This document shows, in pieces, positions 33,091 through 40,653 of a DNA stretch of 64,000 nt (within the stretch, counting starts at the first letter, position 1; every line of letters starts with the position of its first letter). A model generated the notes under the pieces. The model worked only from the letters and a program-made list of their open reading frames with translations. It did not search any database and was not told the origin of the DNA. The stretch is taken from assembly GCA_965112735.1 (NCBI GenBank), contig OZ218954.1, positions 1,364,001 through 1,428,000 of the forward strand, written 5' to 3'. The DNA is from Phaeosaccion multiseriatum (lineage: Eukaryota; Protista; Ochrophyta, other classes). The translations under genes were made by a program, and so were the position numbers.

Positions 33091-35792
33091 TTAAGCGGCG
33101 AACATGAATCTCTTAAAGATGTCGACTTCCGCCACCCCTCCGTAGCACACACCCAACCGCTGCTCCAGAGACTTCACCTCGACGTCCAGCACCGAGCAAG
33201 GAGCCACAGCGTCAACACCACCTCCACCACTTGGTAATACAGCAGCAGCAGCCGCAGCAGCAGCAGCAGCAGCAGGGGGGGGGGCGATGCAGCTTGCTCC
33301 ACCCGCTGCTTCGATAATGAGGGCGATGGGAGCGCACTCGTAGAGTAAGCGGAGCTTGGCCTTGGCGGCGGGGGAGGGTACGTTGCTGAACACGCCCTTG
33401 CCCTATACGGTACATTGGGGGGGGGGGTAGCGGTGCCGTGCGGTGAGGTGGGGGGGTGGGGGGAGGGGCCGGGTGAATGGACTTTGATGTACTACGAAGT
33501 ATGTGTCAGGGGGGAGGGTGGGGGAGGGACGAAATGAATGGATGGGTCATTGGTGCGTGCGTGTGTGTCTAAAGGCTGTGTGGCGGCCGAGAAGACAAAA
33601 CCCCTTCCGAAACAAAGTCGAGGTCGAAAAAACTGCCCAACTCTTTTACAAGCAAGTCTTACGTACCTTGATGAGAATGTGGTTAACGTCGGGCACCTGC
33701 GTTAAGGCAGAGAAGGAAGAATGAAAGGGTACAACGAGGGGAATGACAAGGCATTAAGAGAGGCAGGTAGAGAGGAGGTTACAGGATTAGAGAGAGTGGA
33801 CTTGAGAGAGTGAGATAGCGCGGGGCCACGGAATTACTCACCATCCCCCCGGTGTACCGTAATGTATACCGCTCGTCCACCCAGTAATCAAACAGCTTCC
33901 TGTGAAGGGGAGAAGGAGGAGGAGGAGGAGGCAGACAGCATGAGAAGGGGGCGGAGGGGAAGGCGGGGCTGATGCACAGCACGGCGTGCAGCAGGAGTGA
34001 GCTGAAGAGCGAGAAACACCACCTGGCCATCTCAACTATCCATCGCCTGCGTCTCTTCGCCGTTGGGCTTCCCCCTTCCCTCCCAACTAATCAAGTAGTC
34101 CCTCCATTCGGAGCGGAGGACTGTAAAGGGGCGATCAAGCATCTGCTGTTTGCCCCTTCCCCCTTTTCCCTGCACCCATACGCTTCTTGATGCTGTCGTA
34201 CTTGTATGCGGGGCAGTCTGCGGTGGCTCTGAGGTTTCCCGGTGCGAACACCTTGCCACTGCTCGCGATGCTTAGCTTGGGTCTCGTGAGGTACCAATGC
34301 CCAATTCTGCCGTTCCAGGTCATCTCTACACACACCTGATGGCGGCGAACAAGAGAATGCGTACAGCGTGTGGGTGGGTTGGGGGGGATGGGCCGGTGGT
34401 GGCAATGTGCCGCGGAGACAAGAAGGAAGGAGGGGGGAGCAGAGGGCGAACACGAGGAGGAAGCGGGGCGGGGCACGGGAGGTGCATTGGGCTGCTGTAT
34501 AGGCAAGTAGGCAAGTAGGCATGTGGCAGATAGGTAGGCAGCCATATGCATATCGGCCCTTCTCTTCGAAGGCGATCAAAGGCAAGGTCGACCACCATAG
34601 AGAGAGATGACAGCGTCGAGAGTTAATTTGCCTTTCTTACCGAGCCCTTTTCTTGACCGGTGGCTGCCTCTGGAATGGCGATAATCTGAGAGAGAGAGGG
34701 GGGGGGGGGGGGGGGGGGAGATGAGAAAAAAAGCACTTGGCAGGCGAGCAAGGAGAGCGGCGGGGCGCGCGTGCGCACGTTCGAAGCACACGCGAAGGAA
34801 GGAGCGGAGAGAGAAAGCCCTTCCTTTTTAAGTCGTACCATTGTCGTGCGAGGCCCGTAAGTGGTGATGACTGCGGCGGCTTGCTCCTTGCCAGTAACGC
34901 CAATGAGGCGGGACCCCGGCCCTGCGGGACCGTGAGCAGCAGACGACAAGCGGGGCCAACAGCAGCAAGGAGAGAGGAGCAACCCATTAGCAAGAGTGCA
35001 GCAAGAGAGGGGATGATAGACGGGTGAAGCCAGCCAGCGAACCAACCAACCAATCAACCAGGAGGAGCACTGCACTCACAAACGCCGAAGATGCTACCAA
35101 CTGCAAAGTTGGGCTCAATAACCGACGACCCATCCAAAGGATCGAAGGCCACGCTGTATCCTTCGCCGCCCAGAGCTACCTCCTCCGGCTTCTCCTCGCT
35201 CGACGCTGTGGCAACCACGCCGCTATCCTTGAGGTGCGAGAAGATCGACCTGAGGAGGAGGAGGAGGAGGAGGAGGAGGAGGAGGAGGAGGAGGAGGAGG
35301 AGGAGGAGGAGCGAAGAGTGTGTGAGGCACTGATCGCGGGCGAGAGAATGAAAGACTTTTCGCTGGCGTCAGTCACCCCATGCCCTCACGTACTGGTCAG
35401 CCTGTAGATCGATGGCGAGCTGACCGTCTCCGAACTCGTTGCTCGTCCCTGCCGCAGCGTGGCCCTCCTCTACCGTCCTGTCGAGGTGAAGGGGAGCTAG
35501 GGACATGAGAACGGGGAACATATTGTCCTTCTCCGTTCCCTGACAGAGCCGGGAAAGGGCAGAAAAGGAAGCAGTCCAGGAAGAACGAGGGGAAGAAGCA
35601 CCCGTCGAGTCACTCGTCCTGCCCTCACCTAAGATGATCGCCAATCCATGCTGAGGCATCGGCGATGGCTGTAAGCACCTTGATGAGAGGGTTCTCCTTT
35701 CCCTTCGAGTTGTGCACCAGGCCAGAGAGGATGTCCTCTACGCTGTGGTCCACCTCTCCACTCTGCACCTTCTTGGCTGCCAGTTCGGCCAT
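33091..35792 (-). CDS. SBP: Sedoheptulose-1,7-bisphosphatase (FBPase class I family), no N-terminal targeting peptide, multi-exon
   Basis: NEFGDGQLAIDL, SSEE, VAFDPLDGSS, FGVWPGSRLIGVTG, YGPRTT, FAPGNLRAT, YTLRYTGGMVPDV, KLRLLYECAPIA. The WPG..L.G.TG, PGNLRAT and LRYTGGMVPDV motifs are SBPase-type. In-frame TAG four codons upstream of ATG 35792. Confidence 0.92.
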
Positions 35793-36708: not shown

Positions 36709-37571
36709 GAGTCATCGGCATCAAGAGTGTGGGCATTTCCTTCTGTTTGCAGGCGCTGTACTTCCGTTTTGTCAAGCAGAGCAGCCAAAGAAGGCCTCAA
36801 TAACTGTTCATACATGTATTTTATTGAGCGCGCTGCTGGCGGCTAGAATTGGATCGGTGGCCGTGGGAGAGTGATTTTCGTGAGCTCGTCTCTAAATAGG
36901 GAGTAGGCGTCTCCGAGGCGATTGCAGCTGATTCAACCGCAGGAGACGACCGAGGCAGGAAGAATCTCCCCCTGTCTTAGAATTGCGGACACCCGACGCT
37001 ACATACGCCAAAGTTCGGCGCCCTGCTGTTGCGGGCGTTTCAAGCGATAGCCGAGCCACAGCACTGGGCTCAGAGTAGCTCTTTTGGCTGGATACGCTGC
37101 CGCTTCACTCCCCCCTGCCTGCCCGCTTCGCGAGGGATAGACCGCACCCCAGGACAAGGGAGGCCTGAAGTTAGGGGGCTCGAGGCTTATCGAGGGTGAG
37201 TGGCAGGGCCGGGAGTGGCAGCGACGCATTGTTCTCTCTTCTGTAAAGGACAGTCGAGGGTCGTCGTCCCTACCGCTGGAGCAAAGTCACTTTGAAGAGA
37301 GAGAGAGAGAAAACTGAATTGGAGGAGACATGGGATGGCATTAAAGGTCCAAGTAGTCAAGAAGAGGAGCAGTGGCAGTACGAGCACCAGTAAAACACCG
37401 ATGACTCGTTTCTCAGAGTCTGCCGTAAAAAAAAAACTTCATGTTGCATCTTGCCGTTCTCGCCCCGCTCAGAGTCTTGTTACGAATGCCTCGCTGGGCT
37501 GGTGCTACAGTACCTGCTCTCCCTGAGTCGCTCTTTCACAGCCGCCCCAAGAACAGTATAGGCACTCACGC

Positions 37572-39152
37572 CTACGCGCTCTCCGTGGATATGCGAGAGA
37601 GGATGCGATGCTGCTCCACACTCAGGCCATTGCCCAATTTGCCTTCTCCAATGGACTCCAGGGCAGAGGCGGATATCTCCAGGTGCGGCTCTTTCATGCC
37701 AGCGAAAGCGAAGTGCAACGCATCGCGGGTGGGGTCAAGGACTTGTTTGTAGAAGCACGCATGGGCCGCCGCCACCGCCAGGCGCAGCTCGTGTGTGGGG
37801 GGCAGCAAGCTCTCCGCCTCCTCTCGGGCGGCCTGAGCGATGAGGCAGGAGAGTGGGGCACCAGTAGGACATAGGGAGCCCGAGGGGGAGGCAGAGAGAG
37901 GAAAGAAAAAGGCGAGGAGGTGAATTGAGATAGCGACAGCGAGAGGTGGGCCGAACAAGTAGAGCCGCTGCTTCGATGAGAGTGGCGAGGCTGCTGAGGA
38001 TGGTCGTCAGTGATGACGATGCCCCAAGCTTCTTCCTTCCACCTTCCTTCTTTTCCCCACCCACTCTCACCTCAAACGAACGCAGCGCTCGGTCCACGAA
38101 GTATGCGCGCTCTTCGCTGTCAGACTCTTCTTGCCGCTGGAGCTCAACAAGGTGACCTGCATATCACACGTGCGAGTCGGGGGGGGCACGTGAACAGTGG
38201 GAGTGGACCGGCCGAGGGAACGTCAGTGAGGAAAGGGCAGGCCGGGCTGGATGCTGGATGTGCCATGGCTGTATGTTGGAGCAAGAGGCGGCAGGGTTGA
38301 GCTCTTGCAGATGGCTGAAGAGCAGGCAGGTAGTCCTTATCACTCACCGGAGTAGCGAGCCTTCAAGTAGAGGAAATGCACCTTCTGCTGGGCGGCTGAG
38401 CCAGAGGAAGCAATTTTCTCCCGCAGAGCACCAGTCTCATCAGCCAGCAACTCGTCCAAAACGTAGTTGCAGTATTCTTCAAGGACGGCCTTGGAGTGGG
38501 CGAGCAGGGCCTTGCTGACTTGGCCAGCTTGAGCCTCGTCTATCCTTATCTGAGCGGCGGGCATCTGCCTCCAGAGCGGGAGCTGATCCGACCCAACCTC
38601 GAGCGTGTGGGCCTCTCTCCAGCGGATCAAGTGCGGACTGATGACCTTGCCAATCGCCAGTACGAGCAAGCCCAGGGCCTGGGAGCTGACCTTGTCCGGG
38701 CCGCCCTCGTACTCTGTGTGCCTCCTCACGAGGTCGAGGGCCGCCTCGTACCTGCAGGTTCGGTGTGTGAGCGAGCAGGACAGTATATTCGTTTGGCTGG
38801 CGCGGCCAAGATGCTGCTCTTGTGATGCGTGTGAGGCGCTGCTTCGCTAAAGGGGCTGATAAAGGAGACGGCGTTTGTAAAGAGAGAGAGAGGGAAGATA
38901 AAGCAGAGCCTTACTTCTTCCAGTCAGATTACCACAAGTCAATCTCCTTTTGAAGGCCCTGCCTCGCACATCCTCCATCACTCACCTCTGATCCCTATAC
39001 GCTTCGTAGGCTTTATACACCAATGCATCGTCTCCCTCCAATCCTGATGGCTTGGCCTTTGCAGCAGCTCTTGCTCTCACCACACTGTCCACTACTGCCA
39101 CTCCCATGAAAGCCACCACAATGAGAATCACTGATCCATGGGAGGGTGGCAT
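37572..39152 (-). CDS. Highly divergent 14-3-3-like protein (305 aa) with a predicted signal peptide; exons 38986-39152, 38348-38751, 38071-38156 and 37572-37832
   Basis: Three GT-AG introns with consistent phases (2, 1, 0). Colinear 14-3-3 landmarks: LVYKA..A....RYE, LL..A..VI.....WR, LEEYCN.VLD.L, KVHFLYLKA.Y..L.E, AL..F.AA...A..LLPPTHELRL.....FY..VL. Confidence 0.78.
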
Positions 39153-40653
39153 GGAAAATCGCCGCCTTGCTTGGCGCGGTGCTTTCTGTGTGCCTGCCTC
39201 TTTGTTTTATTTCCTTCCTCTTCCTTCCTCTATATACTCTCTCCAAGAATAGCACTTCGTTGTGGCTCCTGCCTTGCTGTGCGCCTCCTTAGTCCTGTCT
39301 CTTGTGCCGTGCGAATAGTCACCATGATCACCACCAAGGGGAAGGCAAGTTTTGGACCGATGCGATTTTCTGAAACAGCAGTTGGTTCACCGAAGTTGGC
39401 CCTTCCCGCCAGAATATCCCGCCAAGCTATGATACGTGCGCTTCGACCATGGAACTGTACATCGAAACAAATATGGCCATCGATATCGCGCAGAGCGGGA
39501 TCGATTCCGCCCGCGCCGCCTTGGCCTTAGTCCCGGGGGCTGGCGACGACGCGGCGTAGGCGGAATCCATTGAGGGAAGTACTGTATCGCATCCAAGAAC
39601 CCTAGTAGCCTAAAGATGTGCTATCCACCAAGGCATTATGACCAAGGTGTGTATCTCCCTCTCGTTGACACCTCTAACTGCTTCTTGGTGCTGAAAGCGT
39701 GAGAGAGGAGAGAACAATGATGTTGGCCTTGCCTTTCCGCCCCCGCTGCGTCTCGATCCCTCCACTCTCACGCTCCCTTACTTTACGAATTGAATACCAT
39801 TGTGCCTACTCCTGTGCCTTTGCGCGATAGCCTCCCACCCACTCACCCACCCACCCACCCGCCGATGGGAAAGGGCAGTCCCCACTCGCTGAAGCTCAGC
39901 ACCGTCGAGATGAGGACCCGCTTGAGCGAGCTTTCTCCTTCTCACTGCCTCCCACCGCTCTGTCTGTGCGTGCGTGCGTGCGTGTCGATCCTCTGGACCT
40001 CTCTTAGTACCCCTCCGCTTTCCGCGAGCGCAGCAGTTCTCCTGACGTCCTTCCCTCCCCCCCCCCCGCCCGCTGCCCCCTACCCGCTGCCCCTCTCGCT
40101 CATCCTGACACTGTGTGCCGTTTTCTGGGGCGTCTCAGTGGTCCTTCAAAGCGTCGCTGACCACCGCAGCAATGTCCTCCTCGTACCGGCCTACGCAAGC
40201 GGAGGCCACCGTATGGGACGGAAGCGGTTCGAAAGACGGCAGGTCTGATGTATGCAAAGGAAGTGCTGCCTCGCTGCCTCTGGTGCCTGAGCTCGATGGA
40301 CCGGGGGCCGACAAGGGTACTTGAAAGGAAAATGACGTCACTTCCTTTAAGCACCCTTGGGGCCGATGGGGACAAGTGCTGGGGGCAGGCGGCGCTTCTT
40401 TCTGCCCCTGCTGCGCGCACTCTTGCTGCTGCGCTGAAGGGCTGCACGTCTCAGTGCCAAGAATCTCCTCATCCGCACCACAGAATAACTGCGCCAGAAG
40501 CGAGCTATTTCACTGCAAAGCGAGCTCTTCCATCCAATAGGGTTCCCCAAGCATCTCTCACGCACTCCACGCAGGCGTCCAGCTCTGTTCCATTTCTCTG
40601 TCTTTCTCTCTCTCCCTTTCTCTCGATGCGTGCGAAACGCACTACCGGTCATT

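Follow-up and report, generated by a model that had tools for sequence, protein, structure and literature searches.

To our knowledge, all characterised 14-3-3 proteins are soluble phospho-readers of the cytosol and nucleus, and the family is among the most conserved in eukaryotes. Canonical isoforms are typically >50% identical across eukaryotes, with K49, R56, R127 and Y128 (zeta numbering) gripping the phosphate of the ligand and N173 holding the peptide backbone. Here we describe a far more divergent protein, pseudo-14-3-3, encoded in a window of 64,000 nucleotides (the whole stretch of DNA analysed) from the ochrophyte Phaeosaccion multiseriatum (assembly GCA_965112735.1, contig OZ218954.1, positions 1,364,001 to 1,428,000). 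It has the same domain length as canonical 14-3-3s (PF00244; e.g. human zeta, yeast Bmh1), is collinear with them from helix A to helix H/I and retains W59/R60 and the PPTH-x-x-RL motif of helix G. In contrast, the five ligand-binding residues above, together with L172, V176 and E180, are all replaced, the acidic C-terminal tail is missing, and loop insertions (12, 8 and 5 aa) and a 43-residue N-terminal extension are present.

A precedent for a 14-3-3-shaped helical domain used in another context, and so far diverged that its sequence is no longer easily recognised, exists in SMG5/SMG6/SMG7 and Ebs1 (the EST1 family). These domains are, however, parts of large cytosolic NMD factors, and SMG7 keeps its phosphoserine pocket, whereas pseudo-14-3-3 aligns directly to true 14-3-3s, with no EST1-family or TPR-family Pfam match at E up to 10 on any exon piece. 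In a layout of short N-tail, hydrophobic segment, basic flank and all-helical TPR-like binding domain, it also resembles Tom20 and Tom70 of fungi and animals, although there is no sequence relationship and the likeness is one of architecture only. In plants, May and Soll (2000, as cited in PMC3542566) are reported to have described a 14-3-3/Hsp70 guidance complex that delivers plastid precursors to the envelope; this complex uses canonical cytosolic 14-3-3s on phosphorylated transit peptides, whereas pseudo-14-3-3 is without a phosphate pocket. In the Bigelowiella plastid proteome the 14-3-3s lack signal and transit peptides, and their possible part in periplastid guidance was only speculated upon (PMC3542566). 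We found in the literature searched neither a signal-bearing or periplastid 14-3-3 for ochrophytes nor a natural 14-3-3 lacking the whole triad.

Gene structure and relationship to 14-3-3 proteins

An earlier note, made from the letters of this DNA alone, had proposed that four minus-strand exons splice into a 305-residue protein with a hydrophobic N-terminus, a 14-3-3 fold and an erased phosphopeptide pocket. Scripted splicing of the reverse complement rebuilt that model from the window (39152-38986, 38751-38348, 38156-38071 and 37832-37572): the spliced coding sequence of 918 nt comprises 305 codons and a TAG, in frame, the three introns all have G/GTGAG donors and CAG/G acceptors, and each peptide string quoted in the note occurs in the translation. 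The features are as follows.

39231-39236, minus strand: TATATA, 79-84 nt upstream of the ATG
38986-39152, minus strand: exon 1, ATG at 39152, codons 1-55 and 2 nt of R56, donor GAG/gtgagtg; encodes the N-terminal extension and the beginning of helix A (LVYKAYEAYRDQ)
39090-39131, minus strand: hydrophobic core V8-V21 (VILIVVAFMGVAVV), 14 residues, Kyte-Doolittle 15-residue mean up to 3.0
39048-39083, minus strand: basic Ala-rich stretch V24-P35 (VVRARAAAKAKP), four positive charges, read from the translation
38752-38985, minus strand: intron 1, 234 nt, GTGAGT...CAG, phase 2
38348-38751, minus strand: exon 2, residues 56/57-190/191, end of helix A to helix E; G90 (for K49), L97 (for R56), W100-R101 retained
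38157-38347, minus strand: intron 2, 191 nt, GTGAGT...CAG, phase 1
38071-38156, minus strand: exon 3, residues 191-219; G191 (for R127), H192 (for Y128)
37833-38070, minus strand: intron 3, 238 nt, GTGAGA...CAG, phase 0
37572-37832, minus strand: exon 4, residues 220-305 and TAG (37574-37572), helices G-I; A241, A242 (for N173), C245, Q249
37737-37808, minus strand: best-conserved motif LLPPTHELRLAVAAAHACFYKQVL, residues 228-251, corresponding to canonical helix G in HMMER alignments

An in-frame stop lies 18 codons 5' of the start, M1 is the first in-frame ATG after it, and the preceding ~150 nt, read by eye, contain no further ATG; the TATATA is a possible core promoter element. Open-frame length alone is poor coding evidence in this GC-rich genome, because the window holds ~65 stop-free stretches of at least 200 codons on both strands, many of them mutually overlapping. 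The introns have a GC content of 0.53-0.61, whereas the coding sequence has 0.66, 0.42 and 0.71 at codon positions 1, 2 and 3, a pattern that matches real exons elsewhere in the window. The third-position value of exon 1 is low (0.49), and was considered as a mark of a non-coding or newly captured exon; this idea was rejected, as the value lies inside the spread of random 55-codon windows (0.58 +/- 0.115). The best available support for the three splice junctions is that the alignment to canonical 14-3-3 has no gap at any of them, with helix A, for example, aligning gap-free to canonical VYMAKLAEQAER across the exon 1/2 junction.

On the 3' side, a GTGAGTG heptamer (window 37563-37569, minus strand) begins 3 nt after the stop and matches exactly the donors of introns 1 and 2. 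A 3'-UTR intron or an alternative end may lie here, either of which would leave the protein unchanged, the TAG being upstream. Further downstream on this strand, the next gene (window 35600-35791, minus strand) appears to have its ATG near 35791 (MAELAAKKVQSGEVDH...) and reads into a GTGAGG donor; this gene bounds the 3' end of the transcript.

Alignment of the whole spliced protein to canonical 14-3-3 gives a Smith-Waterman (SW) score of 135, compared to 37.5 +/- 5.9 in 2000 shuffles, and bears out the 14-3-3 likeness claimed earlier; exons 1-3 alone score 62 (shuffles 35.3 +/- 5.5, p 0.0005). The alignment is collinear between residues 45-285 of pseudo-14-3-3 and canonical residues 8-220, with ~26% identity over 212 aligned columns. 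Its gaps of 3, 12, 8 and 5 residues, and one single-residue gap, fall in loops, and the insertions in pseudo-14-3-3 comprise 12 aa between helices C and D, 8 aa before helix E and another 5 aa. Among the residues retained are W59/R60 (as W100-R101), Y125 (as Y189), L129 (as L193) and the PPTH-x-x-RL motif. By the shuffle statistics, an unrelated TPR-like protein and a chance reading of motifs were rejected.

Single exons carry this signal unequally. Of the profile comparison proposed in the note, run here by exon, one part stood: exon 4 matches PF00244 at E 0.0031 (17.6 bits, profile positions 146-198), but this is below the Pfam gathering threshold of 33.2 bits, and the Pfam scan of the exon 1-3 pieces gave no PF00244 match. 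HMMER matches exon 4 to 84 PDB sequences, and 60/60 among the matches listed are 14-3-3 chains (best E 0.005); in the Atlas, 38/40 of its nearest clusters are 14-3-3, with a score of 0.94. Exon 2 alone has no Pfam or PDB match; the N-terminal two thirds of the protein are recognisable only by full-length collinear alignment, and an Atlas search with exon 2 returned only nucleoporin-like helical clusters, at low recognition. Single-sequence AlphaFold (AF2) models of exons 2 and 4 are entirely helical, and their helices coincide with those assigned by the alignment (B-E and G-I), but the pLDDT is only 52 and 50, respectively; in Foldseek the low-confidence exon 2 model reaches a best E of 1.3, which is not significant, most of the weak rows being 14-3-3 chains. 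In the alignment the helical scaffold retains its order and spacing between helix A and at least helix H, and we have high confidence that a 14-3-3 origin holds for the entire protein and not for exon 4 only.

The likeness of the C-terminal LSVEQHRILS to LTVEERNLLS had raised the idea of a further 14-3-3 domain downstream; this was rejected, as a tblastn search of the entire window with canonical 14-3-3 finds the pseudo-14-3-3 gene and no other. The C-terminal GKLGNGLSVEQHRILS (37596-37643, residues 283-298) shares 50% identity over 16 aa (pairwise E 0.1) with the canonical helix B/C turn AKLGAELTVEERNLLS, a resemblance that is probably due to chance, since no second 14-3-3 domain follows.

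The phosphopeptide pocket, signature motifs and dimer interface

The computed alignment places G90 at K49, L97 at R56, G191 at R127, H192 at Y128 and A242 at N173, reproducing the G, L, G, H and A mapped by eye in the earlier note. The call of G191 for R127 hangs on the exact exon 2/3 junction, its codon being split by intron 2, and that of A242 for N173 is fixed independently by the HMMER alignment to zeta chains. The groove positions L172, V176 and E180 have become A241, C245 and Q249. All phosphate-binding and backbone-binding positions carry small or uncharged residues. At the level of sequence the erasure of the phosphopeptide pocket is confirmed, and we infer that pseudo-14-3-3 would be unable to read phosphoserine or phosphothreonine as 14-3-3s do. 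It might instead bind a non-phospho ligand, as the note had it.

Canonical 14-3-3s carry two PROSITE-type signatures, RNL[LIV]SV[GA]Y[KN]N[IVA] and YK[DE]STLI[IM]QLL[RH]DN[LF]T[LS]W. Both are gone from pseudo-14-3-3, in which the matching stretches read QALGLLVLAIGKV and IGEGKLGNGLSVEQHRILS; the first (RNLLSVAYKN) is replaced and the second (YKDSTLIMQLLRDNLTLW) does not align. The final helix, described earlier as replaced, presents a mixed picture: the DSTLIMQLLRDNL signature indeed does not align after L285, and the helix I residues N224, L227 and W228 find no alignment beyond that point, but the low-confidence exon 4 model (pLDDT 50) still has a predicted helix over residues 291-304.

Changes extend to the canonical dimer-interface positions, in zeta numbering L12, A16, S58 and R18. 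In the computed alignment three of these have changed to charged residues (L12 to E50, A16 to D54 and S58 to R99) and R18 is kept as R56. The charged substitutions suggest a loss of the dimer interface in helices A-D, and pseudo-14-3-3 probably does not form the canonical dimer.

Relatives, expression and allelic variation

An exhaustive phmmer search with exon 2 against 1.84 billion representatives found no relative among matches at E <= 0.001, a search in which orthologues at or below ~35 bits would be invisible. Two matches, to a fasciclin-repeat protein and a tandem-repeat ORF, were set aside as repeat-driven chance. Word searches with the stop-free frames around exon 4 (79-252 aa) and exon 2 (92-294 aa) gave none, a 305-aa orthologue lying outside these length windows, and locus scans of JGI metagenomes with exon 2 and exon 4 gave no match. 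The orthologue search called for in the earlier note was thus negative within the length and E limits of these methods: across ~15 billion proteins and the JGI metagenomes, phmmer and word searches gave no relative in another organism beyond canonical 14-3-3s, and the length windows, together with an E 0.001 listing at huge database size, could miss orthologues under roughly 30% identity.

The public runs that contain the locus are four DNA data sets from one sample, without the exon joints, and no RNA run is among them. Two allelic differences are present in the source sample, 37761 A>G (H243, CAT>CAC) and 37788 C>T (E234, GAG>GAA). Both fall at third positions in exon 4 and are synonymous, which is weak evidence (n = 2) of constraint. 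Allelic variation clusters towards the gene's 3' end; unitigs of the source sample break and branch several times over 37344-37848 (the 3' UTR and exon 4), and 37819-39400 is a single unbranched unitig.

The N-terminal extension and the placement of pseudo-14-3-3

Canonical 14-3-3s begin ~7 residues before helix A, and the N-terminus of pseudo-14-3-3 exceeds theirs by 37-43 residues, made up of MPPSHGS, the V8-V21 core and DSVV-RARAAAKAKP-SGLEGDD. The hydrophobic N-terminal segment pointed out earlier is real, and foreign to canonical 14-3-3s. A bipartite signal of the usual size is about as long as this extension, and 14 residues are typical for the h-region of a signal peptide. Candidate cleavage sites lie after A19 (G-V-A19), S23 (V-D-S23) and A29 (A-R-A29), with V, R or A, all non-aromatic, at +1. 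The 43-residue N-terminus fits a cleaved signal peptide, possibly of periplastid type, the latter reading being made possible by the non-aromatic +1 residue and the basic Ala-rich stretch, although cleavage after A29 would leave almost no transit-like region. Charge is found wholly after the core (D22, R26, R28, K32 and K34; net +3 over the following 15 residues), with no K/R in residues 1-7. The charge-difference and positive-inside rules place the more positive flank in the cytosol, so that a signal anchor with its N-terminus out and C-terminus in the cytosol fits equally well. The basic stretch V24-P35 may be either transit-peptide-like or the cytosolic flank of such an anchor, and secretory or periplastid entry, itself unproven, competes with a second topology of comparable likelihood.

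Our preferred explanation, to which we give a probability of roughly 0.45, is that pseudo-14-3-3 carries an N-terminal ER signal and enters the ER lumen or the periplastid route. A fast-diverged ochrophyte 14-3-3 paralogue would have kept its helical scaffold and given up phosphoserine/phosphothreonine reading, and the added N-terminus, with its 14-residue hydrophobic core, would direct the protein co-translationally to the ER. Within the endomembrane system the domain would then serve as a helical scaffold that binds independently of phosphorylation. In ochrophytes the path to the periplastid compartment also belongs to this system, since the ER and the outermost plastid membrane are continuous there. 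The very hydrophobic core, short for a membrane span and lying directly behind a 7-residue start, favours this explanation; the n-region without positive charge, followed by four positive charges after the core, argues for the opposite topology.

The same protein with the hydrophobic segment as an uncleaved N-out/C-in signal anchor is a possible if doubtful alternative. The domain would in that case be a cytosolic, membrane-tethered docking scaffold, held, perhaps in the manner of Tom20/Tom70, at the ER or outermost plastid membrane or at the mitochondrial outer membrane. Besides the charge distribution already described, a short N-tail, moderately long core and basic C-flank form the classic signal-anchor pattern of outer-membrane proteins, and outside the present case no 14-3-3 fold is known from anywhere but the cytosol and nucleus. 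The uninterrupted hydrophobic run (V8-V21) is, however, short for a bilayer unless D22-V25 are counted, and small-residue cleavage motifs (V-D-S23, A-R-A29) follow the core. A mis-modelled N-terminus, with the true start at M16 or in an unseen upstream exon and the product cytosolic or bearing a mitochondrial-type presequence (MGVAVVDSVVRARAAAKAKP), is improbable: each of the two ATGs has T at -3, a weak context, no read data support the 5' end, and the Ala/Arg/Lys-rich stretch after M16 does resemble a mitochondrial presequence, but scanning ribosomes normally use M1, which as described above is the first ATG after the in-frame stop, with TATATA ~80 nt upstream. We also consider it unlikely, though somewhat less so, that the gene is a young or dying 14-3-3 duplicate without current function, silent or nearly so, whose hydrophobic N-terminus is an accident of exon 1. 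In keeping with such a copy, every functional hallmark of the 14-3-3 family is lost, the data sets above offer neither RNA evidence nor an orthologue, and exon 1 has its low third-position GC, though within the random spread. Yet, and this is the stronger argument, neutral drift to ~26% identity should have left stops and frameshifts, a random 305-codon frame being open with an estimated probability of ~2e-5, whereas here four exons are in frame with consensus splice sites, canonical helix spacing, the codon-position GC pattern of coding sequence and a retained structural core (W100-R101, Y189, L193 and PPTH-x-x-RL). A decayed copy is argued against because the frame is open across 305 codons at ~74% replaced residues and both SNPs, few as they are, are synonymous. 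The locus is an intact nuclear gene, probably functional, for a fast-diverged, lineage-restricted 14-3-3 paralogue.

If pseudo-14-3-3 does enter the endomembrane system, a more specific and rather improbable role can be imagined. The periplastid compartment is what remains of the red-algal endosymbiont's cytoplasm, and there the protein might act as a phosphorylation-independent guide or holdase for precursors that are imported via the ER-continuous outer plastid membrane and bound for the inner envelope translocons. Such a guide would be, on what is an equally long shot, a relocated and re-tooled counterpart of the plant 14-3-3/Hsp70 guidance complex. A scaffold kept, phosphate contacts gone and an ER-type leader would together show the 14-3-3 fold reused in a ‘pseudo-reader’ analogous to pseudokinases, and a periplastid location would contribute a new component to the machinery by which complex plastids handle proteins, which is poorly known; as it stands the case has limited weight, being one gene in one genome.

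A separate observation concerns a canonical 14-3-3 in an unexpected setting. The 3,968-nt ‘viral’ contig IMGVR_UViG_3300032915_000174 (L001:1-3764) has three ORFs, encoding an RdRP_2 (506 bits), a cysteine-rich Viral_P18 and a complete canonical 14-3-3 (363.7 bits), the last being a host-type gene at the place where hordei/peclu/furo-like RNAs end. The contig may have arisen by natural recombination, from an engineered vector read or through chimeric assembly.
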